NCBI GenBank assembly: GCA_025594325.1
Contig: JANHCV010000003.1
Coordinates: 2,578,355-2,642,354, forward strand
Length of the DNA: 64,000 nucleotides
Direction of reading: 5' to 3'
Source: Blastocladiella emersonii ATCC 22665
Taxonomy: Eukaryota; Fungi; Blastocladiomycota
Below are positions 1-21,494 of the stretch, in pieces. A program made the position numbers and the translations under genes. The notes beneath the pieces were generated by a model, which was not told the origin of the DNA, ran no database searches, and was given only the letters and a program-made list of their open reading frames with translations. Within the stretch, counting starts at the first letter, position 1. Every line of letters begins with the position of its first letter.

Positions 1-2389
1 GTCCCCCGCCACGCGCCTGGGCCCGCCGGTCGGTCCCTGCCGGGCCTGCTCGATCGACGCGTCCCGATCGCCTCGTGCCTCCGCGGCCGCACTCACCGCC
101 CGACCCGCGCAGCTGCCGTGTCGCCTCGACTCCGTCGAGCACGGGCATAATCAGGTCCATGAGGATCACGCCGACGGCCGCGCGCGCGGGCGAGCCGGTC
201 ATGAGCAGCGCGTCGAGCGCCTCCTGCCCGTGGGCCGCCGTGAACACGCGCGCGTACCCGGCACGCCGCAGCGTCGCCACCGTCACCCGCTGCACCAGCG
301 CGTTGTCCTCGACCACGAGCACCGCCGTGCTCTCTTTTTGTGATGGTGGTGCTGCAGCTGCTTCCTCGGTCGACTGCGCCACCTGCTCAGGGGGCGGCGG
401 CGGCAGCTGTTTCGGTGCTGGCGCTGAACTCGACGCTTCTGGCACTGCTTCCGGTGGCTGTGATCCGACGGCACACGCGTCAGGGACGACATCGGACAGC
501 TGCGCTTCCGCCGGCGCGGGCAGCACCACAGCGACTGCCGCCGAGGCCGAGTCCAACATCAGCTCCGACTCGACAAGCGTCGCCTCCTCGTCGGCGTCAG
601 CCGCGCGCGCTGCGCCGAGCAGCGGCGGCCCACCGGGCAACGTCGGCACGGGCCACCGCCACGCCGGCGCCCCGCCCTCGCCGCCAATCGCCTGCAGCGG
701 GCACGGCGCGCCCGAGGGCGTCTTGCACGGCCGCACGGGGACGCGCAGCGTGAGCAGCCCGTCGTGCGCCGACACCGCGAGGGTGCCGCCCGCGGCCTCG
801 GCGAGCGCGTGCATCTTGGCGAGCGCGGGATGGCGTTGCGTGGCCTCGAGCGGTGGCACGCGCAGGCGGACTTCGGCGACCAGGTGCGGCGTGCAGCCCG
901 TCTCGACGAGCACGCCGAGCGTCCACCCGTCGACGGTCGTATTGGTGAGAGCGCGCCCGGCCACAGCGACCTCGGCGAGCGCGCGCCGCGCGCGACGTGT
1001 CACGCACACGCACGGCGGGGTGGTCGCGGTGCGCGGCTGCCCGTGCGGCGAGCCTGGGAGCCCCGTCAGGCTCTCGGCGGCCACGTCGACGTGGTACCAC
1101 CCGTCCGCGTCCGTCGAGTCGCCCGCGTGGTCGCTGTTGCTGAGCGTGTCCGCGGACCCGGCGCGCGAGCCGTGCGTTGGTGGCACTGGCTCGAGGAGCA
1201 CGGTGCCGGGAGCGAGCGCGGCGGGCGCGGGCACCAGCGTACGAGACCACACCCCGACGCTGCCACCGCCGCCGCCGTCGCCGGTGCAGCTGCCAGCGCT
1301 CGACTCGACGCGCTGCTGCTGCTGCACCGGGCACGCCGACCCGGCGCCCGATGGACACGCTCGCACCGGCAGCCGCGCGACGAACATGTGGCCGGGGTAC
1401 CCGCGGCACGGGACGACGTCGACGGCGCCGCCAGCGCGGCGCGCGAGGCGGCGCAGGACCGCGACCTGGAGCCCGAGCAGGCGGAACTCGGCGCCCTGGC
1501 CGGGGACCGACCAGTCAAAGTGGGTGGTGAGCGCCGTGATCTTGTGCGGCGCGAGCGTCGGCGGGAGCCACAGGCGGATCTTGGCCATGGCGGTCGCCGT
1601 GGCGCCGTCGCCGAGCGCGGGGATGTACGACCACCCGTTGGCCGTGGTGCCGGGCACGGTGCGCCCGACAATGGCGATCTTGGTCAGCGCGCAGCGCGCG
1701 AGCGGCGACACGCACATGCACGGTGGCGACGGCGACGGGGACGACCCGGCGCACCACTTGAGCCCGTGCAGCGACTCGGCCTCGATATTGACGTGGTGCC
1801 ACCGCGCAGCGTCGGCCTCGCTCGCACCCGTGCTCGCCGTCGCGTCGACGGCAGGATCGTCGTTCTCGTCGCCGTCGGCCGCGCCCGTATACTCGACGAC
1901 GGCTTGGAGGAGCGCGTGGACGTGTTCGGCGGCCGCGACCACGGCGGCGCGGTCGACGTCCGTCCCAACGGCCTCCATGGTGCCCTGGATCACGTAGACG
2001 GGGTTGCGCAGCTCGTGCGCGAGGTACAGGAGCAGGCGGCCCTGCTGCGCGTTGAGCGACTCGGTCTCCTTGAGCAGGTCGTTGAGCCGCCAGTCGCGCG
2101 TGTGCTGCTCGGTCAGGTCCGTGGTCGCTACTGCTGAGGTCGGGCGAGTCTGGCAGAGCGCTGCCCGAGCCGAGGATGGCGGGCGGCGGCCACAGCAGCG
2201 TGGTCGAGGCGGTTGACCCCCGCGTGGGCTCGAGGTGGCGCGCGAACGGGTCCGACCTCTGCCGGTCACGGCGTGGTTGCGCACGCGTGCTCCTCGAACG
2301 CGCGGTCGGCGAGGAGGACAGCAGCAGGCCGAGGGTCGCGTCCGAGGGTGCTGGAGTCGGCTCAGCAACGTGCGAGCGGGCAGCGGCAT
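1..2389 (-). CDS. HK1: sensor-less hybrid histidine-kinase-like protein (HisKA + two degenerate HATPase-like domains + receiver); 3' end runs off the window
   Basis: Hand translation of an open minus frame (absent from the track because it has no stop in the window) from ATG 2389: TDLTEQ...LLLYLAHELRNPVYVIQG, FDWSVPGQGAEFRLLGLQ, then AVLVVEDN...ILMDLIMPVLDGVEATRQLR. Probable intron donor GTGAGT at 96. Start codon uncertain. Confidence 0.8.
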   Translation of the reverse strand, partial: MPLPARTLLSRLQHPRTRPSACCCPPRRPRVRGARVRNHAVTGRGRTRSRATSSPRGGQPPRPRCCGRRPPSSARAALCQTRPTSAVATTDLTEQHTRDWRLNDLLKETESLNAQQGRLLLYLAHELRNPVYVIQGTMEAVGTDVDRAAVVAAAEHVHALLQAVVEYTGAADGDENDDPAVDATASTGASEADAARWHHVNIEAESLHGLKWCAGSSPSPSPPCMCVSPLARCALTKIAIVGRTVPGTTANGWSYIPALGDGATATAMAKIRLWLPPTLAPHKITALTTHFDWSVPGQGAEFRLLGLQVAVLRRLARRAGGAVDVVPCRGYPGHMFVARLPVRACPSGAGSACPVQQQQRVESSAGSCTGDGGGGGSVGVWSRTLVPAPAALAPGTVLLEPVPPTHGSRAGSADTLSNSDHAGDSTDADGWYHVDVAAESLTGLPGSPHGQPRTATTPPCVCVTRRARRALAEVAVAGRALTNTTVDGWTLGVLVETGCTPHLVAEVRLRVPPLEATQRHPALAKMHALAEAAGGTLAVSAHDGLLTLRVPVRPCKTPSGAPCPLQAIGGEGGAPAWRWPVPTLPGGPPLLGAARAADADEEATLVESELMLDSASAAVAVVLPAPAEAQLSDVVPDACAVGSQPPEAVPEASSSAPAPKQLPPPPPEQVAQSTEEAAAAPPSQKESTAVLVVEDNALVQRVTVATLRRAGYARVFTAAHGQEALDALLMTGSPARAAVGVILMDLIMPVLDGVEATRQLRGSGGECGRGGTRRSGRVDRAGPAGTDRRAQARGGG

Positions 2390-2789
2390 CGAGATCTGGG
2401 CACAGCGGCGCACGTTCGCCAGTTTGCCGGGCCGGCTGCCGGGTGCGACGTGTCGCGGCGCGTCGTGGGTCACGGCGGATCGGCTCTGGTTGGCTCAGAC
2501 TCCATGTCACGGCCGTTGCGGGAAGTGGATTGATACATGGCTGCTGGGCAACGATGCAGACCGGCGAGAGAGAAGAGAGAGCGCGCGCACAGCGTGCAGG
2601 CCGCCGCCAGGGGCCATCCAACGCACCCCGCGCCCGCGGTGATCACGCGCACTTGTCCCTCGCGTCGCAGACGCGTCCGTGCGTCTGTTTCAAAACAGGT
2701 CTTGAAGCCATCGCCACCGTCGAGTACACAAAACGAGATGAATGAATTGCAAGGTAGCGAGCGACCAAAAAAAGGCGAGGGGGGAATAT

Positions 2790-5700
2790 TTACACGAGCG
2801 CGGCCGCGTCGACGGCGCCACCCTCGACGAGCGCCGCGACGGTACCGACGAGCACGTCCTTCTTGACGGGCTTGGTGAGGAATGCGTTGAACCCGGCGTC
2901 GCGGCACCGCGCGCGCTCCGCCTCGAGCGCGTTGGCCGTGAGCGCGAGCACCGGTAGCCGCGCGCGCGACCACGTTGCGCGCAGTTGCCGCGTCGCCTCG
3001 ACGCCGTCGAGCACCGGCATCATGAGGTCCATGACCACCACGTCGACGGGGAGCTGCTCCGGGTCGGTGGGCGAGGACCGCGCGGCGAGCAGGTCGAGCG
3101 CCTGCTGCCCGTCGTCCGCGACAAACACTTCGAACCCGGCGCGCTCGAGGAACCGCCGCGTCAGGTTCTGGATCAGCTTGTTGTCCTCGACGACGAGCAC
3201 TCGGAGCGCAGCGGCGGCTGGCGGTGCGAGGGTGGCCGGTGATGGAGCGGTTGCAGTTGGTGGTGGCGGCGCTGATCGAGGCGCTGATGGTGGTGCTGCA
3301 GCAGGAACAGGCGAGAGCGGGGACGTTGATACAGCTGGTGACGCGGGCAACGGCGTCGCGATGGCAGCCTTGACGAGTCCCGGCGAAAGCAGCGGGACCG
3401 ACTGCGGTATTGGTCGCGCCGGCGGCGGTGGCAGTCGGGGCGGCGGCTCGAGCGCGACCGCCGGGTCCACGGTGCGCGGGCCGGGGCACGCCGCGCCGTC
3501 AGCACACGGTCGCGCGGGCACGGCCAGCCGGATCGCGCGGCCCGCGCAGTCGACGTGCACGCTGCCGCCCGCGAGCGACGCGAGCAGCCGCAGGATCGCG
3601 AGCTGGAGGCCGACGAGGCGGAACTCGGCGCCCTGCCCGGGGATCGACCAGTCGAACGTCGTACTGAGCGCGCTCTGGTCGTGCTCGGGCAGGTCGGCGG
3701 GCAGCGCGAGCGCGATGGTGACGGCGGCCGAGTCGTATCCGCAGTGCGAGACGGACGTTCCGGGGACCGCGGTCGCGACAGCCTCGAGCTTGCGCAGCAC
3801 GCGAACCGCAGCGCGTGTCAGGACGAGGCACTGCGGCCACGCGCCGCTGACGTCGCCGAGGTGCGCGCCGGGCACGCCGCGGAACAGGTCGCGCACCGCG
3901 CTCGCACCGCCGTAGACGTGCGTCGGCAGCTCGAGCGCCGCTGCGCCGTCGCCGGGTAGCCGTGACCGGCTGGACAGCGACATGCGGCGGCGGCGGCGGC
4001 TCGCGGCCAGGCGGCGCGTAGCGAGCGACTCGGCCGACCCGGTCCCAGGCGGAGACACGGGCGAGCCAGTGAGCGGCGAGGATGACGGAGCTGCGGCCGC
4101 CACCGAGTCGCCCGCGTCCACGGCCTCGCGCGCCTCCATGTACTCGACGACGGCGTCGAGCAGGGTGCACACGTGGTCGGTCGCCGTAGCGACAGCCGCA
4201 CGATCAATCGCGTCGCCCGCCGCGGCCGTGGTGCCGGCCGTGTCGCCGCCGCCCTGCACGGTGCCCTGGATCACGTACACGGGATTTCGTAACTCGTGCG
4301 CGAGGTACAGCAGCAGGCGGCGCTGCTGCGCGTTGAGGAGCTCGGTCTCGCGCAGCAGCTCGGCGAGGCGGCGGTCGCGCGCGCGCTGCTCCGTCAGGTC
4401 CGTGAGGACCAGCACCTGGTTGACGGCCGGGTTGCCCGTCGGCTGCGACACGTTGATCATGGCGTCGATGCGGCGCGGCGGCGGCGGCGGGAGTGCGGCA
4501 GCCTCGAGGTCGACAAACTCGGGAGCATCGGACGCGGGGGTGTACGGGATCACGCGGACCTCGCGGCGGCCCGGGTGTAGCATGGCCGCTGTGACCGAGT
4601 CGATGAGCGGGTCGGCCGCCATGGCCTTGCCGCTCCCGCTGCTCGTGGTGCTGCTCATACTGCCCTTGGAGAGGAACTTGGCGGCGGCAATGGCCGGGCG
4701 GTTGGCGCGTGTAATGTCGTCGGTGGTCGTGACCGCAGCGGCCGCGGCAGCGGCGGACGTCACCGGTGCGGGTCCCGACCCAGCGGCCGTGGACAGATCG
4801 GTCGAGCTCGGGCACGGCGAGTCGGTAGGCGCGAGCAGGTCGGCGACGCGGAACACGTTCTGGCGGATCGACTCGGGCGAGTGGCCCGTGAGCGCGAGGA
4901 GCGGCGCGTTGACGCCGACGACGGTGCCCTTGGCGTTGACGAGGATCATGGGGTTGGGCGTGACCTGCATGATGGCCTCGGAGTGCCGCTTCCACGACCC
5001 GAGCAGGCGCTCGGTCGAGTGGAACCGGCGGAGGCGGACGAGGACGCGGGCCACGGCGACGGCGAGGACGAACCCGACGAGCGCCGTGATGATGGGCGCG
5101 GCCACGTTCCACCCGGACGTGAAGAGCGCGTTGAGCTCGGCCGACGCGACGCACGTCGCCTGGAACGTCTGCGCGGCCGCGGTGATGGGCAGCTTGACGG
5201 TGAACTGCGGCAGCGGCGTCGCGTCGGCGGGCGCGTCGGGCGGCGGCGAGTGGTACGAGAAGGCGTCGCCGAGGTCGATGGTCAGGCGCACGAGGCCGCG
5301 GGCGGCGGCGGGGCCGAGCGACGAGTCGAGGTAGCTTTGCAGCTATGGGCGGGACGAGAGTCAGTTGATGGCCACGGTCGAGGTCGAGGTCGAAGTGAAA
5401 AGCGTACGTTGAACCCAGCGCAAATGGCCCATTGTGACCCGTCGGGGCGCGTGAAGGGGCGCGAGTAGTAGAGGACGCCCGGGACCGAGACGCCGAGCGG
5501 GGCGCGGAGCGGGACGACGGTGGTGAGCTGGCCGAACCCGGTCTCGTTGGCGGCGGCCGCAACAAACGCCTCGCCACGGATCCCCGAGCTGAGGTCCCAG
5601 CCGGTGAGCGATGCGCTGTACGGGTAGCTGAGCGACACGACCCAGTACTCGTTGGCGCGCGGGCGCGGGCGCGAGGCGATGATGCGCATGTCGTCGCGCG

Positions 5701-6712
5701 CGATGCGATCGACCGACTCGAAGATGGTCACGTTGTTGGCAGCCTCCCACGCGGCGCGGCGGTCGTCGGCGACGCGCTCGAGGTAGACGAAGCGCAGGTA
5801 GCTCGAGAGGGCGGGGCTGGCCGAGAGCTGGGTGATGGACGCGTTGGTCATGGCGGGCAGCTGCGCGGCCGACGACCGCAGCAGCACGACGGGGGCCACG
5901 ACGCGGCTCGACAGCTCGCCGGCCAGGCGGTCGCCGAGCTGGCCGCACCGGTAGGTGAGCAGGGCGAGGGTGTTGTCGTCCTCGCCGCCGCGCAGGAGAA
6001 AGTGGATGAAGACGGCGAGCGTGATGGCGAGGGCGATCAGGGCGACGGGGAGCACGGCGACGCAGGCGAGCGAGGGCGTCCCGCGGCCCGAGTAGATGGC
6101 GCGCGCGAGACGGTGCCACGGGCGCTGCCACGCGGGCAGGTCGGCCAGGTCCATGTAAGACGAGTCGGCCATGGACGAGGCCTTGGACGCAGCGAGAGGC
6201 ACCGCACCGCCGAGGCCGCCGGTCGGGCTCTGCGGCGGCGGCAGCAGTGGTCCGCCAGCGTGGGCGACGCTGCGGTAGCGGTGCCGCTGCGCCTGGCCGC
6301 CCTCGGCCACGCCCGCGCTCGGCCCAGTGCCCGCGGAGACGAGCAGCGGGATGTCGGCGCCCCCAGCGCGCACGGCGTTGGGCGGCAGGGTGCTGAGGGC
6401 CCCGTCGGGCGATGCGGCGCGATGGCGGCGCGGCGGGCGAGTGCGCCCAGCAGGACCGGGAGCGCTGGCAGCGGTGTCGCGCGACGAGGTGCCGGCGGAG
6501 GCGGCCGAGTCGCCCGATACGGTGCGCGCGGCACTGGTGAGCGGGAACGAGGCGTCGAGGGCGATCAGCGGCGCGTGGTCGTGGTCGGCGTCGTCGTTGG
6601 CGCGAGCCCGCGACGGTGCGGCGGCAGAGGGAGAGCCGAGCGGGAGCAGCGGCAGCGGCGGGAGCGTCTGGGCGCGCTTGTGCGGATGGCGGGAGCGGTC
6701 GCGCGGCGCCAT
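2790..6712 (-). CDS. HK2: membrane hybrid histidine-kinase-like receptor TM-CHASE-TM-PAS-HisKA-degenerate HATPase-REC; exons 6712-5408, 5342-2790 (~1285 aa)
   Basis: Two TM helices flank a CHASE-like segment (YLERVADDRRAAWE...EYWVVSLSYP...GWDL). Intron 5343-5407 (GTACGC...CTGAC...ATAG) joins the two track ORFs in frame. Also PAS (AIMQVTPNPMILVNAKG), LAHELRNP, and REC (VVEDN, MDLMMPVLDG, LTAN, FLTKP). Confidence 0.9.
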
Positions 6713-7504: not shown

Positions 7505-8440
7505 TCACGCGGCGCCGTTGGCCGCCTTGGCTGGCGGCGCGGGCAACCGGCCGGCGCGCTCGAGGCTGCCGTCGACAAGGCGCCACGCGGGCAGGAACTC
7601 GTCATCACGAACGCGCAGCGCCGGGTTGGGCACGGTGCGGTCGCGCGCGCCGAGCGACGTGTACCCGAGGTCGTACAGCGGGCAGTACTCGACGCGCAGC
7701 GCGAGCAGGAACAGCCAGATGTCGGCGAACCGCCAGTCGAGGATCGGGTTGACGCGCACCAGGTCGGGCCACCCCTTGTCCACGTCGCACGGCTGGAACG
7801 CCGCCAAATGTGCGCACCACGGGTCGGTCCGCCGCGTCCCGACGCACACGGCGCGCGCCGCCGGGAACGCCGCGTGGAACGCCGCGAGCCCCGCCTGCAT
7901 CGGGCCCGCCACCGTCACCATGTGCAGCCGGTACCGCGCCGCGCACTTGGCCACAAACGCCGCCTCCTCGGGGAACCCGTTGGCCGGCGCCACGTGCACC
8001 GTGATCAGCTTGGTCGCCGCAGCGTCGGCGTCAACGCCCGCGAGCCGCGCGTGCCGGTGCAGCACCGCCGCCAGCATGTGCAGCAGCACCGTGCAGTCCT
8101 TGCCGCCGTTGAACGACATGCCGAGCTGCCGCGGCGGCGGCGCGTGATACTCGAGCACCGCCGCCTCGAGCGTGGCGACTGCGCTGGTCACGATGGAGAC
8201 GAGCCGCGCGCGTGCTGCGTCGGAGAGTTGGGAGGTTGCGGGCAGCGGGAGCGGTTGTGCAGGGTCGACGAGCCGCGTCGTGGCGACAAACTCGTACACG
8301 TCGCGCTCGACGGCCGCGAGGTCGAGTGGCGGGTACAGCGGGAGGTCCTCGGGGCCGCTCTCGGCGAGGGCCGCCAGCGCGGCGAACGCGTCGGCGTCGG
8401 TGCCGAGGTCGACGGCAGTCATGGGGCCGTTGGGTGTCAT
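7505..8440 (-). CDS. FAD1: FAD synthetase (PAPS-reductase family FMN adenylyltransferase)
   Basis: SFNGGKDCTVLL PP-loop, VGTRRTDP, RVNPILDW and YCPLYDLGYTSLG motifs. ATG at 8440 (alternative 8422). Confidence 0.92.
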   Translation of the reverse strand: MTPNGPMTAVDLGTDADAFAALAALAESGPEDLPLYPPLDLAAVERDVYEFVATTRLVDPAQPLPLPATSQLSDAARARLVSIVTSAVATLEAAVLEYHAPPPRQLGMSFNGGKDCTVLLHMLAAVLHRHARLAGVDADAAATKLITVHVAPANGFPEEAAFVAKCAARYRLHMVTVAGPMQAGLAAFHAAFPAARAVCVGTRRTDPWCAHLAAFQPCDVDKGWPDLVRVNPILDWRFADIWLFLLALRVEYCPLYDLGYTSLGARDRTVPNPALRVRDDEFLPAWRLVDGSLERAGRLPAPPAKAANGAA

Positions 8441-8743
8441 TGGTTCACCGTCTAATACATGGGAGGAAGGAGGGCGGGAGAGTGAGCTGACAGATGGGCG
8501 TGGAAGCCCGATCGTCGCGTGACCGGCGCGCGCGGCAGCGTGGCGCGGAGACATTGCATCACTCTGCGTGGCGCATCAGGTGCGCGCACGTGCGCCGATC
8601 TTTCTCGCGCGTGGCGTCTCCGCTTGGCGTCTCCCCTTGGGTGCCGCGCCACAGCAGTCCCCGCTCTCCCTCCCTCGGCAACTCTGCACCGAACCTGCTA
8701 CGCATCAACGAACTTCACACGCACGCACGCACGCACCCGAGTC

Positions 8744-10092
8744 ATGGCCTCCGACTCGACGACCATGACCTCGCGGCCCGCCCACCCGCCCCGCGCGCCC
8801 GCCGCCGCCGTCGTTGGCAAGCCCGACGTGCGCTTCCTCGACGTGACCGTCGACGAGGCCGACCTCGACGGCTGGGCGCGCCGCCTGGGTGCCGACCTCG
8901 GCCTGGCCTCGGCTGCCGACGTGGCCGCTGCGCGCGTGACGCGGTGCAAGCAGGGCATCACCAACAAGCGTACGCCTGCTTGCTCCGACTTGCTGTGCCC
9001 GCGCGGCTGACCTCCTGCTCCAGTCCTCAAGGTGTCGCTGCCGAACGGCACAAAGTACCTCGTGCGCGTGTACGGGCACGGCACGTCGGCGCTGATTGAC
9101 CGTGACGCCGAGGTGCGCAACATGGCGTGGCTCGCGGCGCACGGCATGGCCCCGCCGCTGCACGCCCGCTTCCGCAACGGCCTCGTCTACGGCTTCGTCC
9201 CCGGCGACGCCGCCCACCCCGAGGCCCTCGCCCACCCCGCCGTCTGGCCCGCCATTGCCCGCCACGTCGCCGAGTGGCACGCGCTGCCGCTCCCGCCCGC
9301 CGCCAAGGACGCCGGCTCCACGCTGTTCCCGACGCTCGACCGCTGGCTCGCCATGGGTACGCCTCGCGCTGCTTTACCCGCCGGGAACTGCTCGCTGACG
9401 CAGTGCTCTGCCCTCCTCCAGTGTATGAGTCGGCCGGCCCGTCCGCGACCCACTTCCACGGCATCGCCCTCGCCGACCTGACGGCGCAGCGCGACCTGCT
9501 CGCCGCGACGCTGCCCGCCACGCCCGTCGTCTTCGCCCACAACGACCTGCTGTCGGGCAACATCATCCTGCAGCACGCCGACGACATTACGCCGCCGACC
9601 TCGCCCACCGTGACCACCTCGTCGGGCAACGACTCGGACGACCACATCGAGACCGAGTCAGAGCTGCGCACCGTGGCGCGCGCCCGCTTCATCGACTACG
9701 AGTACGGAGGCGTCGGCTGCGCGGCCTTCGACATTGCAAATTCATTTTGCGAATGGGCCGGGTTCGACTGCGAGTACTACCGCTACCCGTCACTTGCAAC
9801 GCAGCGCGCATGGCTGCGCGTGTACCTCGGCGCGTCGGCCACCGACGCCGCCGTCGACGTGTGGCAGGCCGCCGTCGCCGAGTACACGCTCGCCGCGCAC
9901 CTGTACTGGATCCTGTGGGCGCTCGTCCAGGCCACCGTGTCCGATATCGACTTTGACTACGCCGCGTACGCCAACCTGCGCTGGGCCGAGTACCACCGCT
10001 GGGCCAAGACCAAGTGCCCGCCGCCTCCGCCATGTCGGCCCGCGTCGGCCGCGTCCGCGGCCTCGTCGGCGCTGGCCGAGGGCGCAGAGTAG
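8744..10092 (+). CDS. EKI1: Ethanolamine/choline kinase; exons 8744-8969, 9024-9356, 9422-10092
   Basis: QGITNKL, LVRVYG, Brenner motif FAHNDLLSGNII, FIDYEYG, AFDIANSFCEWAGF. Two GT-AG introns restore the frame. Confidence 0.9.
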
Positions 10093-10167: not shown

Positions 10168-13100
10168 CTACGCGACGTACACGCGCGCCTGCGCAATCAC
10201 CCGGTGCCCGGTGAGGTCGACGAGCCCCGGGAACACGGTCCACGCGACCTCGGCCGTCGCCGCGCCGCTACCACCGCCCTTCGCGCCGCCGCCCTTCATC
10301 CCCGTAGTGTCGTGGACGCTGGGCCCGCCGACGACGATCATGAGCGCGTCGCGCACGGGACACCCAGCCTGCGGGACGACGAGCGCCGCGTACGCGCGCG
10401 CCGCCTTGATCCGGTACCACCGCACCGCCTGCGTCCACAGAAACTCGTCCCAGTCGATGCCGCCGCTCGCGAACGCCGCAGGGAACACGCGGGACAGGTC
10501 TTGCCGGAACTGCGCCGCGCCGACGCGCGCGACGAGCGCGAGCGCCGCAACCGGGTCGTCGCGTGCGTACTGCTGCGGCGGGTGGCCGCCCAGCGCGCCG
10601 GGTGCGAGCGCGGGCGAGGAGGAGGCGGCCGCCACCGCGTGCATCCCGGCGGGCCGCATCACGTCGCGCGCGCGCACGTCCCTTGCGACCGCGGCGATAT
10701 CGGCAAACAGGTGCGCGAGGTGTTTCGGCTTGGGCGCGGCGCGGCTTCCGTCGCGACTCACGACAAACAGCGCCGGGTGGACCACCGCGTCGAGGAACTT
10801 GCGCAGCAGGCCCGTCAGCTGGTGCAGGACCTGCGCGCGGTGCCGGCGCGCCGACGCGAGCCCGTCGACGGCGTGCAGCGACGCCGAGGCCATGACCGGG
10901 GACGCCGTTGGGTCGGTCGGGGTGAGCGGTTCCGGGGCGGCTGTCGACGAGTTGGAGACCGCAACGGCGTGCGCGGCGACCGTGCTCAGGTCCACGAACA
11001 TGGCGTACCAGTCGTCGAGCACGCCCGCGAGCGCGACCTCGGGGTCCGCGTCCGGCGACGAGTACGACGGGAACACGGACGCGAGGTCGTCCTCCTCGTT
11101 CGTCGCCATTGCGTGGTTTGCCGTGTGCGCGGGCGCGGGGTGATGGTGCTTGCGCCGCGCGGCCGTGGCCGTGGGCCGCAGCCCGAACGACGACAGCGTG
11201 ACCGAGCAGCCCGCGAGATCGAGCGGCGCGGGTTTCGGGCGCCGCTGCGACCCGGCGCGCGTCAGCGACAGCGCGAGCGACGCGACGGGCGTGGTTGAGC
11301 CGTACTCGTGGTGTTGATGAGCAGGCACGTCGCGCTGCGTGCGGCTCGTGGTCGCAGCAGCTGCGGCGGCGGCAGCCCGGTACTTGCTCCCCGACAGCGA
11401 CCGGCGGAGCCCGTGCACGGCGCCGGCGACGACGCGCAGCGCGCCCGAGGACTCGGTGCTCGCCCGCGGCATCGTCGCCGGAGTCACGAGCGCGGGGGCG
11501 GCGACGCGCGTGTCGAGCGACAGGGACACCTCGCTCTCGCGCAGCGCGGCCGGGACCAGGTACATGCTCTCCTCGGACCCGGGCGGGATCAGCAGCGAGT
11601 CGTGCGACGGGCGCTTGCGCGCCTTGGCCGCACCAAGCTCGCGCGCGGGCTCGAGGGCGTCGAGGTGCGGGCGCGGGGACATGTTGCCGTCGCCGGCGCG
11701 CAGCGACGCGTCTGACGGTGCCACGACGCCGTGGATCGGGAGCGAAAGGGCGCTCCCGCTGGCGAGCCGCTCGCGCGAAATGGACGCGACCTCGGCGCCG
11801 CCGTCCTCGTGGTCGTTCATGGGCAGCGTGTGCTGGCCGAGGGCCGCGGCGGCCGACGATGAGGCCGACGGCGTGCTGCGGAAGCTGATGGCGTACTGCG
11901 GGGCGGCCGTCGTCGTGGACGCGGTCGCGAGCGAGGCGGTCGCCGAGTCTGTCTTCTTGCCGTGACGTACCGCGGGCGACACGTCGGCCGCGCGCGCGTG
12001 CTTCGACGGCGCCATCAGGCTGCTGCCGTCGTTGGACCACGACGTGACCCAGGGGCTCGCGGGCGCGGTCCCGTTGACGGGCGTGTCGCACGGTGTCGCC
12101 GCCGAGTCGCAGGAGGCCGTCGAAGAGGAGGCAAAGTAGAGGCCCTTGCCCGGCAGCAGCGTGCCGCTGGTCCCCGTGCCCGTGCTGCTGGTCGGGCTCG
12201 CGGTCATGGCGCGGTGCGTAGTGCGGCGCGCAACGTCGGGCGACGCAGCAGCGGCGGTGGTGGCGAGGAGCGGGCCAAGCGACGCGTCGCTGGTGGCGCC
12301 GTCGCGGACCGTGTACAGGTGGGCGACGGAGCCGGGCGAAGCGGGCGAGCCAGCACGAATGATGGCCGAGGTGGCGGCGAGTGGCGACGGGACCGGGGTC
12401 TCGCACGGACCGGCCCAGCCGGAGGGCGCGCTGGCGCCGGTCGGCGAGGTGCGGGCGAAGGTGGAGCCCGGAGCGAGGACGAGGTGGTCGCGGGACGGCA
12501 CCTTGCGCGCGCGGCCGACCATCTCCTGGCGGCGGTCGTAGCGGCGCTTGCGGTTGCGACGGCGGCGGAGCAGGAGGAGGGCGGCGATGCACAGGGCGAG
12601 CAGGGCGAGGGCGCCGAGGACGGGGCCGACAATGAGCCAGGTGCGCGAGGCGGTCAAGTCCGAGGACGAGTCGTCGTCGGGGACGCTAGCACCCGTGGTC
12701 GCGGCGGTGCCCGCGCCCGTCGGGCTCGCAGGCGAGGAGCCGTTCTTGCCGCTGCCGGCGGCCGAGGCGACGGTGACGCGGCCGGTGCAGGCGATGGGGC
12801 CGACGATGCTCGAGTCGGGGCGGTTGAGGGTGACGCAGGCGGCGGGGTTGTCGTTGAAGCAGCCAATGACGGCGCCGGTGCGCGGGTCGGCGTCGGCGGC
12901 GGCGACGACCTCGTTGATACGCAGGCCTGATGGATGGCGCGGAGTAAGTCTCGATGACCATGCCACACGATCAAGCGGATGATGAGTACAGTACCAGCAG
13001 GAAGGCCCTGGAAGGCGGCGTCGCCGGGCGGGCCCGAGCAGCCGGGGTCGCAGGCGCTGACCGAAGCGCCGAGGGCGGCGGTACCGCGGGCGCGCACGTC

Positions 13101-13433
13101 GTCGACGAGGTCCGAGTGGATGACGAGGGTGCCCGAGGAACAGAGCAGGGCCACGTCCCGCAGCGGGGCGTTGTCCTTGCCGACGGTGGTGAAGGGGTAG
13201 ACGACGCAGCCGCGGATCGGGGCGGGGGCGCGCGGGTTGATGATCAGGTTGTCGATGGCGGTGCGGACGCCGGCGGGCAGGCGCAGCCAGTTGGCGGACG
13301 AGCGCCAGGCGGCGGCGTTGTGGGTCGGGCGGTACGACGGCATGGCGGCGCACGCGCCGAGCGGGAAGACGACGTCGGCGCCGGCGGGGGCGGCGGTCGC
13401 GGACGCGCGGGTCGACGAGGCGGTCGCGCTCAT
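10168..13433 (-). CDS. Single-pass membrane protein (~1065 aa): Cys-containing N-terminal region, long disordered cytosolic tail, folded C-terminal domain; exons 13433-12995, 12926-10168
   Basis: Intron 12927-12994 joins two track ORFs in frame. TM WLIVGPVLGALALLALCIAALLLL is followed by the stop-transfer RRRRNRKRR. Start uncertain. Confidence 0.7.
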
Positions 13434-14744
13434 GGCGGCAATGAGTGTGCGGTGCAGATGCAAGGGACGGCCGCGGCGGGAGAGCGATGGCTGGAGAGCA
13501 AGAGCGAGAACTCTATCGAGTCGAGATGGCGTCGCCGTCGAGTCGCCGCTGCTCACGAGTGGGTGGGCGCAGCGGCGAGGTGGGCGCGGGAAGCTGCCCG
13601 GCAGAGCAGGTCGGCGGGCAGAGGGCGATCGCAGCGGCCGAAGCAGCGAGGCAGCGGGTGGCGGTCGAGCAGAGCGGAGAGGAGGTCGGGACGGGACGGC
13701 ACGCGCGTCGCTGCAGGGACGGACAGTCTAGGGCGGCGCGGCGAGTGCAGCGACTCTACTCCATGTACATGTGCGAATCCACGATCAACGGGAGCGGGCG
13801 ACGTCGGCCGGGTGGCAACCGAAAACTCAAACGGCTACACCGCACACGTGACGCGATGGCAGGGCTCGACATGGCAGCTGCCACACCGCAGGCACACCCC
13901 ATTGCCGCTCGGAGGGGCGCAGAGGTTCACCGCGACGATGAGGTCGATCACTGACACGGCGAGGCACGCGCTCTTGCACATGCGCCGTGGTGGCCGTGTC
14001 TGCGCCGCCGTATCGCATCGGGGAGCGAGTCGGTGAGCAGGCGAGCCGGGCGTGCATGTGCCTTGAGCGAGAAAAGAGAAGAGGGAAATTGGGCGTGGCC
14101 TTGCGGGCAGCGAGCAGTGGCGACCGCGATAAGGGGGGCAACGGGGGCGGCGGCAGCGGCGCGGTCGGCCGATCAGATCGCGGCGTGGCGCCGAACGCCC
14201 GATCGCGGCCGGCGCGTCGGCGGGTTGCCTCGCGCTGTGCGCCGCGGCCTCGCGCTCGACACGGCCACCCGCCCGGGCCGACCAGCTCCGCTCACATGGG
14301 CCAAATGAGTGGCGGGTCCGCGCTGCTCCCGCGCTCGCGCGCGCGTCCGGCCGGCTGCCTGGGGGCCGGGCAAGGCGGCGCCCTCCAGGGCGCCCTCCCC
14401 TGAGCGTGCCAGGAAGCCCCAAACCGATGATTCGGCCCTCGGTGCGCGACGCGACTGCAGTCGCATTGCAGTCGCATTCCTTCCCACGCACCAGGTCGAT
14501 CCGCGGCGATCGGGCGCGCCCGCCGCTCGCCTGTCAGTGCAGCACGGCGAGTGGTGCGGACAGGAAGGCGACGGAACGGACAGCGCAGCTCGAGGCGCTG
14601 CCGAATCCGTGCGCTCCGCTGCCCCAACCCACCCCCCACCGATACGCGACGCACTTCTTTCGCAACTTGCTGCAACTTGCTCTCGGCGCGGGCGCCGTTC
14701 TCCACCTGCCCGCCGTCGCCGCCCCCGCGGCCTCCCGCCCCGCC

Positions 14745-17700
14745 ATGCCGTCCCCACCGCGGCTGCCGCTGCCGCTGGCCCGCGCGAGCACCCACTCGTC
14801 GTCTTCCCCGCCACCACCGCGCCCGTGCCGCCACCCCCTCGACCGCTGCTGGTGCCCCGGACCCGGCCGCCGCAGCAGCAGCACTGCGTCGCGCTCGCGC
14901 TCGCGCTCCCGCATCCGCGTCGACGCCGCTGCCGTCGCAACCACCGCCCCGCCCGCCGGCACCCACTTTATCGCTGTCGGCGGCAGCACCGGCAGCACCG
15001 GCAGTAGCCATCGGGACCATACTCGCCCGACTGGTCCAATCCAGCGGCCCGCGCGACGATCCTCCTCCGATGGCGACTGCAGCGGCAGCAGCAAGGGCGC
15101 CGCCGTGAGCCCGCGCCGGCTGCGCGTCCTCCGCCTCGCCTCGCTGTACGGGCCCGCGCTGCTGGTCCTCCTCATCGCCGCCGCCGCCACCATCCTCGCC
15201 CACCGCTCCGTGCGCTACGTCGAGTGGAAGAAGTTTGTCTCGGCCGTCGGCACCCGCTGCTCGATCCAGGCCAGCAAGTTCGAGTCCGAGCTCAACGGCC
15301 GCCTGCTGACCCCGACCCGCGCCATGGCCGCCTTCGTCGCCGGCCGCGCCGCACCCGTCGGCGACGACGTCCTCGCCCGCCTGTGCAGGGCCACCAACTT
15401 CTCCTCGCTCAACCGCGCCCTCGTCGCCGAGCGCGTGCCCGACGCTGACCGCGCCGCCTGGGAGCAGCGCACCGGCATCACCATCAAGGAAATCGACCTC
15501 TTTGGCGACCCGCAGTCGGGCGTCCGCGTCTCGCAGTTCCGCCCGCGCCCGCCCGGCAGCCGGCCCGAGTACTGGCCGGGCATCGCCACCGCGCCCAAGA
15601 ACACGTCGATCCTCGGCCTCGACGTCAACGATGGCGTCCGCGCCCCCGCCTTCCTCGCCGCCGCCTACCGCACCAGCGCCGACGGCGCCCTGTCCAACGC
15701 CTTCCCGCTCGTCGCCGCCGCCACCGAGCCCGACGATCCCGCCGGGTCCTACTCGTATGGCATCGTCTACTACGCGCCGAGCTTCGACGTGCCCACCAAC
15801 GCGTCGGGCACCCCCGGCAATACCACCTACGTCGTGTCGCTCGCTTTCAACCTGCGCCGCTTCATGGACACGGCCATCTGCCCGCCCTCGGTCGCCAGCT
15901 ACATGCGCTACACGCTCTACGTCAACAACACGGTCGCCTACGTGTCGCCGTCGTTCCCGACCGACGGCGCCCCCACGGGGCTCGCCGTCCGCCGCAGACT
16001 CACCCTCGGCGGCCAGCCCATCATGCTCCTGTGCCAGCCCACGGCGCCCTCGGCCGCGCTCTACCTCACCATGTGGCAGATCTACGCCCCCATCATCGCC
16101 GCCGTCGCCGGCGCCCTCCTCACCTTCACCGTCTACCGCCTCACGCGCCGCTTCCAGTGGTCGCGCAAGGTTCGTTTCCTCTTGTGTGGCTACTGCTGCC
16201 ATGACACTCGCTAAACCAAGACTTGTGTGTAGGTCGAGGACCTCCTCGGCAGCTGGCGCAGCTACTCGCAGGCCGTCATCCAGGCCAACCCAAACGGCAT
16301 GATCCTCGTCGACCACGCCGGCATGGTCACGGGCGTGAACGAGCCGCTCATGATGCTCGCCGGACACAACTGCACGTCGATCCAGTCCGTGTTCCAGATC
16401 ACGGACCTGCTCAAGCTCATCCCGCCCCCGGACGGCGACCGCCGTCACCGTGAGCGTGAGCATGAGCGGAACCAGGCCGCCGCCGACGACCACGACCACC
16501 GTGACGGCACTTGCGAAACGGACGCCCTGCTCGGCTCGCCGCCCCGCCCGCCCCGCAGCCGGTCCCAACACCACTACCGCCACGCGAACACGGACGCGCA
16601 CCACCGGCGCCGCCGCCGCCAGTCGCCGTCGCCCGAGTGGACCCGCAACCCGCGCGTGCACCAGCAGCTGCTCCTCGCGCCGGGCCGCCGCGAGGCCCAG
16701 CTCCTCGGCCCGCACGGCGCCCTCACCGACGTGGTCGTGAGCGTGTCGGAGCCGACGGACGACCCGGAGGTCAGCCAGGTGCTCGTGCTCACGGACCTGA
16801 CGGAGCAGCGCGCGCGCGACCGCCAGCTCAACGAGCTCCTCGAGGAGACCAAGTCGCTCAACCAGCGCCAGCGCCGCCTGCTGCTGTTCCTCGCACACGA
16901 GCTGCGCAACCCCGTCTACGTGATCCAGGGCACCATGCAGGCCGTCGAGTCCGACGTCGACCGGTCCGCGGTCCTCGCCGCCGCCGAGCACATGCGCGCG
17001 CTCCTCGAGGGCGTCGTCGAGTACATGGGCGCGGCCGACGGCAACGACGGTGACGCGGCCGAGGTCAGCGAGTCGGCCGAGGGTGGGTGGTACCACGTCG
17101 ACGTCGCGGCCGAGAGCCTGCACGACCTGCCCGCGTGTCCACTCGCTGCGCCACCACCCGCGGCCGCAACATCGCCCGCCTGCGTGTGCGTGTCGCCCCT
17201 TACGCGGCGCGCGCTCGCCAAGATCGCCGTCGTCGGGCGCACGATCCCGGGCACCGCGGCCAACGGGTGGAGCGTGCTCGACTCCCCGCCGCCGGCACGC
17301 GCCGAGGTCCGCCTGTGGCTCCCGCCGACGCTCGCGCCGCACGAGGTCAAGGCGCTGACCACGCGGTTCGACTGGTCAGTCCCTGGCCAGGGCGCCGAGT
17401 TCCGCCTCCTCGGGCTGCAGGTCGCGGCGCTCCGCCGACTCGTCGAGCGCGCCGGCGGCAGCGTCAGCGTGGCCCGGTGCGCGCCGTCCGAGCCGGGCTC
17501 CGGGTACGTGCTCGCGGTATGCGTCCCCGTCCGCGCGTGCCCCGCGCCGCCCGGCGCCCCGTGCCCGCTGCAGTCCATCAAGCCGCCAGCGCCGACGCGC
17601 GATGCGTGGCCAGCAACCGCACCGACGTCGCCCGTGCCCTCGCGGCCGCCATCGGGTGGCTGTTCACCGCCCGCCACGACCGCCGCCGCCGTGTCGTCCG

Positions 17701-18359
17701 CGCTTCCGGTTCCCGCGGATCCGCCAGAAACGAGGCCCGCGGCCGCTGTATCAGCAGACTTGCTCCCGCCGCCGCCGCCACCGCCTGACCCGGCCGCGCG
17801 GGCGCCCAGCCCTGTAGCGCAGTGCGCTTCGCCTCCAGCCGCTGCCGCGCACGATACCACGTCGCCCGATGCCGCTGCCGCTGCCGCTGCTGCGCCCGGC
17901 GCACCACCACCGCCGCAGGAACGCACGGCCGTCCTCGTGGTCGAGGACAACGAGCTCGTGCAGCGGATCACGGTGGCGACGCTGCGGCGCGCGGGGCACG
18001 TCGTGCACACGGCGGCCAACGGGCAGGAGGCGCTCGACGCGCTGCTGACGCCCGGCTCGCCCGCGCGCGCGGCCGTCGGCGTGGTCCTCATGGACCTGAT
18101 GATGCCCGTGCTCGACGGGGTCGAGGCGACGCGGCGGTTGCGCGCCACCGACGACGCGCATGTCGCGTCGCTGCCCGTGATCGCCATCACGGCGAACGTG
18201 CTGCGTGAGGAGCTCGTGCGGTGCTACCGCGCCGGGTTCACGGGGTTCATGGCGAAACCCGTGCCGAAGCCGCGGCTGCTCGGCGCCGTGGCCGCGGCGC
18301 TCGCGGGCACCGCGGCCGGCGGCGGGTACGAGTGGCCCGACGACCTGCTCGACTCGTGA
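14745..18359 (+). CDS. HK3: membrane hybrid histidine-kinase-like receptor TM-CHASE-TM-PAS-HisKA-degenerate HATPase-REC; exons 14745-16169, 16233-18359 (~1183 aa)
   Basis: CHASE-like ERVPDADRAAWE...EYWP...ILGLDV. Intron 16170-16232 in phase 0. PAS AVIQANPNGMILVDHAG, FLAHELRNP, REC VVEDN/MDLMMPVLDG/ITAN/FMAKP. Confidence 0.9.
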
Positions 18360-18732: not shown

Positions 18733-21494
18733 ATGCCGCCATGGGTCCGCCTCCCAACCGCCGCCGCGCGCGACGCGGCAGCAATCCACGAGCACGACGC
18801 GGCGGCCCGCGGCGGTTCGGACGCGACGCTCGTGTTCAGCAGCGATTCTGCCGCTGCTGCCCCCGGCCCTGCACCGCCACCGCCGCTAGCCAAGCGCACG
18901 CGCGTCCAGCGTGCCGCGCAGTGGGCCATCTTCGTGGTCCCGGCCGCCGTCGTCTGCCTCGCGATCGGTACGGGCGCGGCCCCTGCACCATGCGACGGGG
19001 CCCTTAGCCTAACAGCCGCGGCACGGTAGGGCTCGCCGTCTACACGCACCTTGAGATCCGCGCGACCGAGGTGCGCAATGTCGACCAGGTCTACACCTTC
19101 CGCTGCACGCAGCAGGCACAGCGGCTGCGCAACGACCTGCAGAGCCAGCTCGTCGACCCGAGCCTCTACTTTCGCACCTACGTCACCATGCTCGGCGCCG
19201 TGAACCAGTCCGCCGTGTCGAGTTTCGGGGATGAGGGCGGCATTTCGCCGTTCCTGCGCTTCGTCATCATGCAGCGCGTGCTCGACGCCGACCGTGCCGC
19301 GTGGGAGGCCGCCACGGGCACCGTCATCACCGTTCCCAACGCCATCAACACGTCGGGGGTCGGCAGCGCTGTCCGCCGCCCCGACAGCGCCGCAAGCGTG
19401 TACTGGCCCGTCCGCTACACGTGGCCGCGCAACGACACCATCGCCGGGATCGACGGCGCCTTCGGCTCGCGCGCTGTCGTGCTCAACCGCGCCATCGCGA
19501 CCGGCGAGTACCAGATCTCGGACGTGGTCCCGCTCGTCGCACCGCGCGTCTTCGCGGCACCCGGCATTGTCCTGTTCACCCCGCCCGTCGACCGCGCCAT
19601 CGACCGCACGACGTGGATCTCGTGGACCGGGTTCAACGTACGCTCTGGCTTGGTTTGGGATGTGCTCATGCGCCGCTCATCACGGCCCGACGCTGTAGAT
19701 TGTCCCGTACCTCGAGTCCACCATGACCCCGACCGCGCGCTCCTCACTGGTCCGCATGCGCGTCGCTATCAACGGCACCAGCGTGTACAGGAGCCCGGTC
19801 CCGCCCAACGACCCGCCCGACTTTGCCGCCTCGCACACGGAGCCCATCCTCCTCGGCGGTCAGACCTTCACGCTCGAGTGCGCGCCGTCGACCGCGCTCC
19901 GCGCCATCTTCGCGTCTGGGTGGGCCGCTGGCGCGCCGATCCTCGTTGTGGTCGGCGGACTCGCACTCGCTGCGCTCGTGCACCAGATCCTCAAGCGGCT
20001 TCAGCGCCTGCGAGCGGTACGTTCGTGACGGTGGTATCGTTCGATCGGACACTGACGCGCGCAACGTGAGGGGTGTAGACCGAGTCGCTCATCGGGTCAT
20101 GGAAGGGCTATACCGAGGCCATCATGCAGGCCACGCCCAACCCGATGATCATGCTCGACGCGCGCGGCGACATCTCGGTACCGTATCCCAGCACGACGCC
20201 CACTCACCTCGCAGCGCGGCTCTGACCGGTGCATGTGTAGGGCGTCAACGAACCGCTTCTCGCCCTGACCGGCCACACGCCCGGATCCGTGAGCCAGATC
20301 CGCGACCTGCGCGAAATGCTCCGCGTCGCCGAGCCGCGCTCGCCGCCCGCCTCGCGGCTTTTCGTGCGCCGCGGGAGCACCGATCCAGCTGACGAGGGTG
20401 TCGATGTGAGCGACGCGTTCTTGGCTGCCCAGCGCCGGGCGCGGGCGGCGAATGATGACGAGACCGACGACGATTACGACGAGGACGACGATGACGGCGA
20501 CGCGCAGACCCGCGCCCTGGTCACGCCCGGACGCCGCGAGGTGCACGTCCTCCGGCCCGCGCCGGGCGCCGACCCGATCGACGCCATGGCAACCGTCTCG
20601 CACGCGACGGGCAACTCGGTCGTCAACCAGGTCATTGTGATCACGGACCTGACCGAGCAGCGGCGGCGCGACCGACGGCTCGCGGAGCTCCTGCGCGAGA
20701 CGGAGCTGCTGACGGCGCAGCAGCGGCACCTGCTCCTCTACCTCGCGCACGAGCTGCGCAACCCCGTGTACGTGATCCAGGGCAACGTCGCCGCGGCGAA
20801 CGGTCAAGACGCGCCGCCCGTCGACCGCGAGGCCGTCATGACCGCCACCGAGCACATGTGCGCGCTACTCGACGGCGTCGTCGAGTATATCGAGGTCGGC
20901 GCCGGGCTGCCGCGGTGCACCAACTCGGGCGCCGCCATCGACGCGGCCGTCACGGCGGGATCCGCGCCGCCCGTCGCGCCGCCGCCGCTGCCGAGCGACC
21001 CGCTCCGCAAGCGCATGCACGTCGACCTGGCGCACGCGCTCGCTCTGCCCCCAGGGGTCGCCGTCACGGGGCTCGACCCGATTCACATGACGGCGGCCGC
21101 GCTGCGCGCGCTGTCCAAGCTTGACGATCTGACGCGCTCGGTCCCTGGCTCCTACCTCTCGTCCATTGCCGTCACGCCCGCGACTCCCGCTACCGGCGAC
21201 TGGCCGGGGCGGAGGCCGCCGCTTACCGTGACCGTGACCGCGACGCTTTCGATCGCGGTCCCCGACGACGCGCGCATCCAGTCCGTGACGGCGCAGCCAT
21301 TCAACTGGACCATCTCGGGGCTCGGCGACGCGTTCCACCTGCTCGGGCTCCGGCTCGCGATCCTCATGCGGCTCGCGGCGCTCGCTAAGGGCGGCGTCGG
21401 GGTGCGCGCCGCACAACGCCAGGCCGTCGTTACGGTGCCCGCGTGGCCGTGCGCGGCGCCGTGTCCGCGGGCGGGGCCGGCGACAGAGGCGTGA
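18733..21494 (+). CDS. HK4: TM-CHASE-TM-PAS-HisKA-degenerate HATPase without receiver; exons 18733-18967, 19030-19637, 19699-20016, 20079-20177, 20241-21494 (~837 aa)
   Basis: Four GT-AG introns of 61-63 nt join the track ORFs in frame. QRVLDADRAAWE...VYWPVRYTWP...GID, AIMQATPNPMIMLDARG, YLAHELRNP. Stop TGA directly after the HATPase-like fold. Confidence 0.85.

Follow-up and report, generated by a model that had tools for sequence, protein, structure and literature searches.

A cluster of candidate receptor pseudo-histidine kinases with retained phosphotransfer residues in Blastocladiella emersonii

The final 64 kb of a 2.64-Mb contig of the fungus Blastocladiella emersonii ATCC 22665 (JANHCV010000003.1, positions 2,578,355 to 2,642,354; 72% GC), a stretch of 64,000 nucleotides that we refer to throughout as the window, holds four genes, HK1 to HK4, of a tandem cluster related to hybrid histidine kinases (HKs). 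It is well supported by the sequences and a predicted fold that the proteins of this cluster are receptor pseudo-histidine kinases. We infer that they are unable to bind Mg-ATP or to autophosphorylate, since the residues of their catalytic and ATP-binding (CA) domain that hold the nucleotide have been lost, as had been proposed for all the window kinases in a first-pass annotation of this DNA. The histidine of their dimerization and histidine phosphotransfer (DHp) domain has been kept, as has, in three members, a complete receiver (REC) domain, and we discuss below how such proteins might act on a histidine phosphotransfer (HPt) protein encoded beside the cluster.

Five clustered receptor genes

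A whole-genome HisKA search showed that the tandem cluster comprises five paralogues. The four kinases counted by the first-pass annotation are all in the window and a fifth, HK0, is located just upstream of it on the same contig, in the directly adjoining segment G000:C15:2568355-2578354 (L001). A six-frame scan of the window recovered, in frame and always in this order, an H-box HELRNP and a motif F[DN]W[ST][IV][PS]G from each of the four genes, the motif being 0.5-0.65 kb downstream of the H-box, which agrees with the annotation both on the sharing of the motif and on its positions. Since the four genes are paralogues, chance is not the issue in this recurrence. The features of the five genes are as follows, with window coordinates unless L001 is given.

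HK0 main exon, L001 4988-7594 (-): 3-8 kb upstream of the window; same architecture, variant motif FDWSVTSQGATF, complete REC
HK0 CHASE exon, L001 ~7665-9692 (-)
HK1, 107..2494 (-): truncated, rearranged paralogue without CHASE or N-terminal PAS; DHp kept, H-box HELRNP at 2000-2017 (-)
HK1 CA copies: first degenerate CA at 1355-1801 (-), with the motif at 1484-1519 (-); second tandem copy at 725-1099 (-), FDW motif lost, more decayed
HK1 REC, 143-322 (-): breaks off after the phospho-Asp
HK2 main exon, 2790..5291 (-): end of CHASE, transmembrane segment (TM), PAS, DHp with H-box HELRNP at 4281-4298 (-), degenerate CA at 3504-3923 with the motif at 3621-3656 (-), complete REC at 2865-3200
HK2 CHASE exon, continuing upstream, ~5400-6700 (-)
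HK3 gene, 14745..18359 (+): NCBI H9P43_003728, 1183 aa, protein mapped to 14745-18356; in order, N-terminal region, TM, CHASE, TM, PAS with low-complexity insert, DHp, degenerate CA, Pro/Ala linker, REC
HK3 CHASE, in open reading frame (ORF) 14406-16214 (+): Pfam match
HK3 intron, near 16215-16298: single, short, in-frame, ~63 nt
HK3 DHp (HisKA) hairpin, 16791..17024 (+): His, Glu at +1, Asn at +4; H-box HELRNP at 16896-16913 (+)
HK3 degenerate CA-like domain, 17088..17543 (+): the stretch flagged earlier was 17195-17545
HK3 N-box helix LTRRALAKIAVVGR, 17193-17243 (+): without Asn
HK3 G1 equivalent LWLPPTLAP, 17313-17339 (+)
HK3 vestigial F-box/lid/G2 FDWSVPGQGAEFRLLGL, 17367-17417 (+): shared motif at 17367-17402 (+)
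HK3 end of CA-like domain VPVRACP, 17523-17543 (+)
HK3 receiver, 17931..18263 (+): Pfam Response_reg, 76 bits
HK3 REC residues: E-D 17931-17951; phospho-Asp in MDLMMP 18090-18107; Thr in ITAN 18186-18197; Lys in AKPV 18252-18263
HK4 gene, 18778..21494 (+): NCBI H9P43_003729, 822 aa; TM, CHASE, TM, PAS, DHp with H-box HELRNP at 20748-20765 (+), degenerate CA
HK4 degenerate CA, 21012-21452 (+): motif FNWTISGLGDAFHLLGL at 21300-21335 (+)

Pfam searches of HK2, HK3 and HK4 at E<=1 identified HisKA in all three (22-27 bits, near the cut-off), Response_reg in the REC-bearing genes and PAS in HK2. CHASE sits in upstream exons and was found by Pfam in the HK3 exon and in the genomic matches for HK0, HK3 and HK4. 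The resulting layout, in which CHASE lies between two TMs and is followed by PAS, HisKA and REC, is that of group XIX of the fungal hybrid kinases, with the exceptions of HK1, which has no sensor, and HK4, whose protein stops right after the CA-like domain and has no REC. Long open frames free of stops run through HK0, HK2, HK3 and HK4; HK1 may be a pseudogene or a soluble adaptor. In addition, a long low-complexity insert (window 16380-16800 in HK3, with equivalents in the other paralogues) splits the PAS domain and differs between paralogues, being His/Arg-rich in HK3, His/Gly-rich in HK0 and Asp/Glu-rich in HK4, with dN values of 0.9-1.6 between them.

Loss of the ATP site and identity of the shared motif

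No match to HATPase_c (PF02518) was obtained at E<=1 in HK2, HK3 or HK4. High GC content is not the cause of the missed matches, since canonical hybrid kinases encoded by this genome reached 51-96 bits with the same profile. These canonical B. emersonii kinases, which have textbook N, G1, F and G2 boxes, are four genes of the HisKA, HATPase_c and REC type, located as follows (contig and position).

C11:578k
C19:524k
C16:504k, a duplicate of C19:524k
C11:1727k

To place the individual residues, we aligned the region from the DHp to the end of the domain in 12 family members with that of eight canonical DHp-CA sequences (six from the protein profile search and two from B. emersonii). The helix at the N-box position lacks an Asn in every family member, as had been claimed. 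Both glycine columns of the G1 box are gaps in 12 of 12 members, whereas all eight canonical sequences have D, G and G. The earlier statement that no G1 D-x-G-x-G remains is therefore right for the glycines and too broad for the acidic residue: an Asp occupies the G1-Asp column in four of the 12 members, including HK2 and HK4, and in none of HK0, HK1 and HK3. In the G2 box only the middle glycine of three has been kept (9/12), the flanking glycine columns being mostly Leu and Gln. The two HK3 strings that the annotation had cited as replacements for the N and G1 boxes, LTRRALAKIAVVGR and VRLWLPPTL, are present at 17193-17243 and 17313-17339 and map to the N-box helix and to the G1 strand and loop of the predicted fold, respectively.

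The shared motif had been taken for a new conserved element. Our alignments indicated otherwise. Global profile-profile alignment of the family with the canonical DHp-CA sequences gave a probability of 99.9%, and the CA parts on their own, after removal of the DHp, still gave a local alignment of 78 columns that extends from the G1 strand to the final strand (hhalign 95.5%, E 1.4e-8). Joint alignment with MAFFT places FDW on the F-box, GQGAE in the ATP-lid segment and FRLLGL on G-x-G-L-G-L, and the helix and strand that follow the motif (VAALRRLVERAGGSVSV) align with the canonical helix and strand after G2. Judged from these alignments, the motif F[DN]W..G.G..F.L.GL is what has been conserved of the F-box, ATP lid and G2 box.

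Two well-conserved cysteines flank the CA-like domain (HK3 17181-17183 and 17538-17540, in the same columns in other members). The first stands just before the N-box helix, in C-x-C-V-S-P or C-L-V-L-T, and the second in the closing P-x-R-x-C, in 9/12 members. The pair is found in none of the aligned canonical kinases and could form a disulfide or a metal site.

Predicted fold of the degenerate domain

An AlphaFold2 (AF2) model of HK3 residues 662-920, built from a six-sequence alignment, had a predicted local distance difference test (pLDDT) score of 78 and a predicted template modelling (pTM) score of 0.73. It consists of two long helices (3-50 and 58-82) followed by the strand and helix order of a CA domain. 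Foldseek returned at least 85 matches in the PDB at E<=0.001, and the top 50 listed were all DHp-CA structures; matches to HK853, an EnvZ chimera, DivL, RetS and ChpT had E values of ~1e-6 over 240-270 columns. The VIA comparison gave a Z score of 12.5 to 4kp4_B (190 residues aligned, rmsd 3.5), isolated CA domains matched model residues 98-249 with Z of ~7, and the degenerate HK-related domain of plant phytochrome A matched with Z of 7.5-8.1. Together, the Foldseek and VIA matches span model residues 1-250. A search of solved structures with the family profile itself produced only non-significant matches (E ~1), in which the H-box and the G2 helix were in the right order. The alignment with HATPase_c and the modelling that the annotation had recommended thus lead to one picture, a homologous CA remnant that is predicted still to fold as a Bergerat-type alpha/beta sandwich although its nucleotide-binding residues are gone.

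Relatives and selective constraint

The annotation had also suggested a search for the family beyond this genome. A profile search of 1.84 billion representative proteins identified 27 proteins at E<=0.001. All nine matches at E<=1e-10 belong to Blastocladiomycota, as do the weaker P0011, P0013 and P0025 (B. britannica and Sorochytrium), and members of the family were found in B. emersonii, Blastocladiella britannica, Catenaria anguillulae, Paraphysoderma sedebokerense and Sorochytrium milnesiophthora. For the flagged genes themselves, two Catenaria proteins, P0001 and P0002, were the best matches (E 1e-45). All proteins recovered in a homologue search with the Sorochytrium member as query were distant canonical kinases of bacteria. 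When the relatives were scanned, none of the nine fungal proteins had a Pfam HATPase_c match at E<=0.01, and the sole match in the scan was a weak one of 20.6 bits in a metagenome protein, P0020. Because none of the nine matched, the ATP-binding residues were most likely lost before these lineages of Blastocladiomycota split, and the domain was kept afterwards.

The B. britannica protein P0006 has kept FDWSRPAQGAAF and the receiver and has lost the H-box His (FVAASMVAPL), which shows that the motif can persist in a protein that is seemingly incapable of phosphotransfer.

The constraint argument rests on the comparison with Catenaria. In that comparison dN was 0.41-0.56 for the C-terminal half of the CA, 0.41-0.42 for REC, 0.23-0.32 for the DHp, 0.72-0.83 for the linkers and ~1.4 for the PAS insert, the N-terminal half of the CA evolving much faster than the C-terminal half. 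By NG86, with dS saturated, the DHp had the lowest dN/dS of the protein (0.10-0.15) and is its most strongly constrained part, the C-terminal CA half reaching 0.29-0.34 and REC 0.35. The degenerate domain is therefore conserved, as the annotation had held: it has been kept across genera, has a predicted CA fold and, in its C-terminal half, evolves about as slowly as REC. The value near 1 that the annotation had named as the mark of neutral decay was not approached by this half against Catenaria, whereas the values among the paralogues, to which we return below, were uninformative.

Phosphotransfer residues and the neighbouring HPt gene

The H-box was reported as intact by the annotation and proved to be invariant: HELRNP, with the His, Glu at +1 and Asn at +4, is identical across all six sequences of the alignment (five from the cluster and one from Catenaria). 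Kinase activity of HisKA proteins requires the acidic residue beside the His, and their phosphatase activity requires the Asn or Thr at His+4 (PMC3510030). A phosphatase-type E-x-x-N motif is thus present in the DHp of all five paralogues and the Catenaria protein, all of which would on this ground be competent for the phosphatase reaction. The receiver was complete in HK0, HK2 and HK3, with VEDN, (M/L)DLMMP, (L/I)TAN and (T/A)KPV and scores of 76-91 bits. The claim that receiver residues are intact wherever a receiver is present fails for HK1, which ends after the phospho-Asp and has neither the Thr nor the Lys; HK4 has no receiver, as stated elsewhere in the annotation.

The genome has a single detectable HPt gene, as determined with the Pfam profile and a self-search with its main exon, and this gene is next to the cluster. 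It is convergent (tail-to-tail) to HK0, with ~130 bp between its 3' end and the HK0 stop codon. Downstream of the Catenaria gene for P0001 there is likewise a convergent HPt gene (151 aa; L002 14288-14990, -) of the same exon structure. A tblastn search with this Catenaria locus (L002), together with Pfam labels, identified two further genes of a shared block, which are listed with the HPt gene.

HPt gene, Ypd1-type, with GHFLKGSAAALG, L001 ~4239-4855 (+), G000:C15 ~2,572,593-2,573,209: four exons; 5 kb upstream of the window
PAPS-reductase-like gene, window 7544-8356 (-): syntenic with Catenaria
Choline-kinase-like gene, window 8828-10014 (+): syntenic with Catenaria

The order in Catenaria is choline kinase, PAPS reductase, kinase and HPt, and the order in B. 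emersonii is the same, the kinase having been expanded to HK2-HK1-HK0 on one side and HK3-HK4 having been added on the other. The linkage of HPt and receptor is no more than suggestive of a functional connection.

Other degenerate transmitters in the genome

The family profile (A1) identified the five cluster genes and one weak outlier at C15:253k (L009) in the genome, and at E<=0.01 it recovered none of the genome's canonical kinases. Beyond the cluster, B. emersonii has at least six more genes with dead transmitters (C15 being the contig of the window).

L009, C15:0.253 Mb: CHASE-PAS; His and receiver kept
L013, C19:1.569 Mb: CHASE-PAS; His kept, no receiver detected
L014, C15:0.52 Mb: CHASE-PAS; His lost, no receiver detected
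L015, C1:2.89 Mb: CHASE-PAS; His lost, no receiver detected
L016, C15:1.21 Mb, with a duplicate at C15:1079960: CHASE-PAS; His lost, no receiver detected
L010, C11:1.606 Mb: separate gene; Phe instead of His, receiver intact

The species presents a graded series (His and receiver kept, His kept with no receiver detected, both lost) that should be useful for studying the evolution of pseudoenzymes.

Possible function of the cluster proteins

In the Blastocladiomycota the ATP site has apparently long been dead, with His, phosphatase motif and receiver all retained; signalling should therefore proceed via phosphate removal, relay or protein-protein contacts. The mechanism that we favour, and to which we would give slightly better than an even chance, is that the proteins are ligand-modulated phosphate sinks or phosphatases acting on phosphorylated HPt (HPt~P), a proposal built on the retained residues and on analogy with a plant receptor considered below. 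Phosphate would enter the pseudo-kinase receptors only from outside. The four canonical hybrid kinases elsewhere in the genome would charge the single Ypd1-type HPt, and HPt~P would pass phosphate back to the receiver Asp of HK0, HK2 and HK3, where it would be hydrolysed with help from the E-x-x-N motif of the DHp or else parked on the His. Binding of a ligand to CHASE would alter the geometry of the DHp and hence the rate of the drain, such that the receptors would set the level of HPt~P and correspond to the phosphatase half of Arabidopsis AHK4 without its kinase half. HK4, which lacks a receiver, and the truncated HK1 would serve as dimer partners, if they act at all.

A wider version of this proposal, which we put forward tentatively and think rather more likely to be wrong than right, is that the whole CHASE repertoire of the Blastocladiomycota gave up kinase activity, with the cluster operating as a reversed phosphorelay that drains HPt under ligand control and the F-box/lid/G2 vestige serving as a docking surface for the receiver or HPt. 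The genome of B. emersonii has at least 11 CHASE-receptor genes versus four canonical kinases.

Several observations weigh against the drain. Other CHASE-PAS receptors of the genome have neither His nor a detected receiver, and because of these losses the wider family can evidently signal without any phosphotransfer. The adjacency of HPt and receptor is weak functional evidence, since it is part of a larger syntenic block with unrelated genes (choline kinase and PAPS reductase), and since no such pairing was found within 10 kb in Sorochytrium or Paraphysoderma. Within the genome, dN/dS among the paralogues (NG86; GC3 ~0.9) was 0.4-1.1 for the CA region and does not discriminate, because REC itself gave 0.5-1.0, values that are probably due to the high GC3 and compressed dS. 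When the HK3 DHp-CA dimer was modelled together with the receiver of the same protein, the predicted complex scored 0.00, a result that speaks neither for nor against binding.

The same losses of His and receiver bear on the possibility that the cluster proteins are phosphorylation-independent receptors, in which the pseudo-kinase is a dimeric conformational transmitter or scaffold that recruits effectors, as in DivL, the subfamily-2 ethylene receptors and phytochromes, with the receiver as an interaction domain and the vestige as a binding surface. At least four other CHASE-PAS genes (L014, L015, L016 and its duplicate) lack the His and have no detected receiver, B. britannica P0006 combines the motif and REC with a lost His, HK4 does without a receiver, and the HK3 model matches DivL, RetS and phytochrome HK-related domains. 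However, in the cluster and the Catenaria orthologue the His, Glu+1, Asn+4 and catalytic residues of the receiver are strictly kept, which would be unexpected if phosphotransfer were irrelevant, and it is the DHp that is under the strongest constraint against Catenaria. We consider this explanation unlikely for the cluster, if far from unreasonable. Alternatively, the proteins might be sensor-fused histidine phosphotransferases of the ChpT/Spo0B type, whose DHp His would shuttle phosphate between their own and other receivers in a relay that is gated and not drained. A DHp with a His and a CA-like domain seemingly unable to bind ATP matches that architecture, the receiver is intact as well, and the ChpT structures 4fmt and 4fpp are among the Foldseek matches; but a dedicated HPt gene is already next door and an Asn that never varies at His+4 suggests the chemistry of a phosphatase, so that a shuttle seems distinctly improbable to us.

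We attach a similarly small probability to the proteins still being kinases, either through an unconventional mode of ATP binding or because a canonical kinase, joined with them in a heterodimer or a larger assembly, phosphorylates their His in trans with its CA. The Glu beside the His that kinase activity needs (PMC3510030) is invariant, four of 12 members including HK2 and HK4 have an Asp in the G1-Asp column, and the genome has four canonical hybrid kinases that might act as donors. Nevertheless, apart from the middle G2 glycine kept in 9/12 members, the family is missing the N-box Asn and the G1 and G2 glycines, which to our knowledge are universal in GHKL ATPases. The five paralogues being all dead, none can serve the others, and heterodimers with the canonical kinases are unlikely because the H-box and DHp of the family are very different from theirs, and no canonical kinase is recovered by the A1 profile at E<=0.01. 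Lastly, the genes might be decaying pseudogenes of a former kinase cluster. HK1 has the appearance of one, its sensor being absent, its CA remnant present in duplicate and its receiver broken off beyond the Asp, but the long open frames without stops already make this unlikely for the other four (HK0, HK2, HK3 and HK4), and a degenerate state conserved in other genera, a confidently predicted fold and a dN/dS of ~0.3 against Catenaria leave decay of the cluster scarcely credible.

A practical consequence of the dead ATP site is that it changes which assays, and which designs of yeast complementation, make sense.

Other genes of the window

Lists of ORFs made in the bacterial style are misleading at 72% GC. 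A bacterial origin of the window, as its GC content and GTG-rich ORFs might suggest, was ruled out by the introns in the genes and by best protein matches to B. emersonii ATCC 22665. The annotation had correctly supposed that the DNA is fungal. Eukaryotic domains were identified by Pfam in other ORFs of the window, such as the talin FERM and ERAP1 domains below. The region is subtelomeric and rich in sensors. The 1061-aa ORF between the two halves of the kinase cluster had no Pfam match of any kind.

10168-13353 (-): 1061-aa ORF between the kinase-cluster halves
26437-27969 (+): ORF with a bacterial-type periplasmic binding protein domain (Peripla_BP_6), in the sensor-rich subtelomeric region
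46802-50155 (+): long ORF with a talin-head FERM F0 domain, in the same region
57826-59934 (+): single ORF with an RNase H match (residues 161-270) and an ERAP1-like C-terminal domain (residues 473-702); it could be an odd fusion, or an intron or gene boundary could have gone unrecognised

Comparison with known systems

The annotation had regarded the cluster as its best candidate for an undescribed system, but the family has been described in part. Its Catenaria orthologue, CaHHK4, is listed by Herivaux et al. (2017, PMC5285503) as a CHASE 'cytokinin receptor homologue', and Kabbara et al. (2019, PMC6324907) place the fungal CHASE hybrid HKs in group XIX. P0001 corresponds to CaHHK4 of Text S1 of PMC5285503, allowing for small differences in gene models. 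CaHHK4 has, like the cluster, the H-box HELRNPVYVIQG, the motif FDWSISGQGSEF and the order CHASE-PAS-HisKA-REC, and its neighbours are the same (choline kinase, PAPS reductase and HPt), making it a direct orthologue; the locus has one copy in Catenaria versus five in tandem in B. emersonii. The accessible text of PMC5285503, PMC6324907 and PMC7700396 treats these proteins as hybrid kinases and makes no mention of a missing ATP site, although the loss might be visible in the figures.

Inspected by eye in Text S1 of PMC5285503, CaHHK3 and CaHHK5 of Catenaria, AMAG_01137 of Allomyces, GrHHK7 of Gigaspora and the CHASE kinase of Basidiobolus lack a canonical N-box Asn, G1 and G2, and Spizellomyces SPPG_01597 keeps the Asn and D-T-G-E-G. 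The loss of the ATP site may thus extend beyond the Blastocladiomycota, to judge from these published sequences. For the CHASE hybrid kinases of early-diverging fungi a role as plant-like cytokinin receptors, used to sense plants, has been put forward (PMC5285503, PMC7700396), an idea that assumes kinase signalling. If the wider version of our proposal is correct, what has been published as 'fungal cytokinin receptors' would be phosphatases or sinks gated by a ligand and not kinases, and this may extend to the Glomeromycotina and Basidiobolus members, on the strength of the inspection by eye.

The activity that we propose has a precedent in a plant. Like the cluster proteins, Arabidopsis AHK4/CRE1 combines a CHASE sensor with transmitter and receiver domains, and in the absence of hormone it was shown experimentally to dephosphorylate HPt proteins (AHPs) via its receiver Asp (PMC6963811). 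AHK4 differs in having an intact catalytic domain and being a kinase as well, whereas the cluster proteins lack the N, G1 and G2 residues, and sequence similarity between the two is negligible outside CHASE, HisKA and REC. The subfamily-2 ethylene receptors ETR2, ERS2 and EIN4 have a folded but degenerate HK module, followed in ETR2 and EIN4 by a receiver (PMC5285503), and the plant phytochromes are likewise eukaryotic receptors that keep a folded, degenerate HK-related domain. These receptors have other sensors and other signalling partners and have mostly lost the His, while the cluster has kept the His, E-x-x-N and receiver residues.

Among bacterial proteins DivL, RetS, ChpT and Spo0B share with the cluster a DHp and CA-like fold that has no productive kinase activity and is reused for binding or phosphotransfer, and DivL (4q20), RetS (6dk7) and ChpT (4fmt, 4fpp) were among the best structural matches to the HK3 model. 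DivL, which has been described as a repurposed kinase (PMC4211667), has a Tyr in place of the His, none of the four has a CHASE domain, and ChpT and Spo0B are soluble and without sensor or receiver. Pseudo-histidine kinases are known as a class, and the B. emersonii cluster adds to it a eukaryotic membrane-receptor example.

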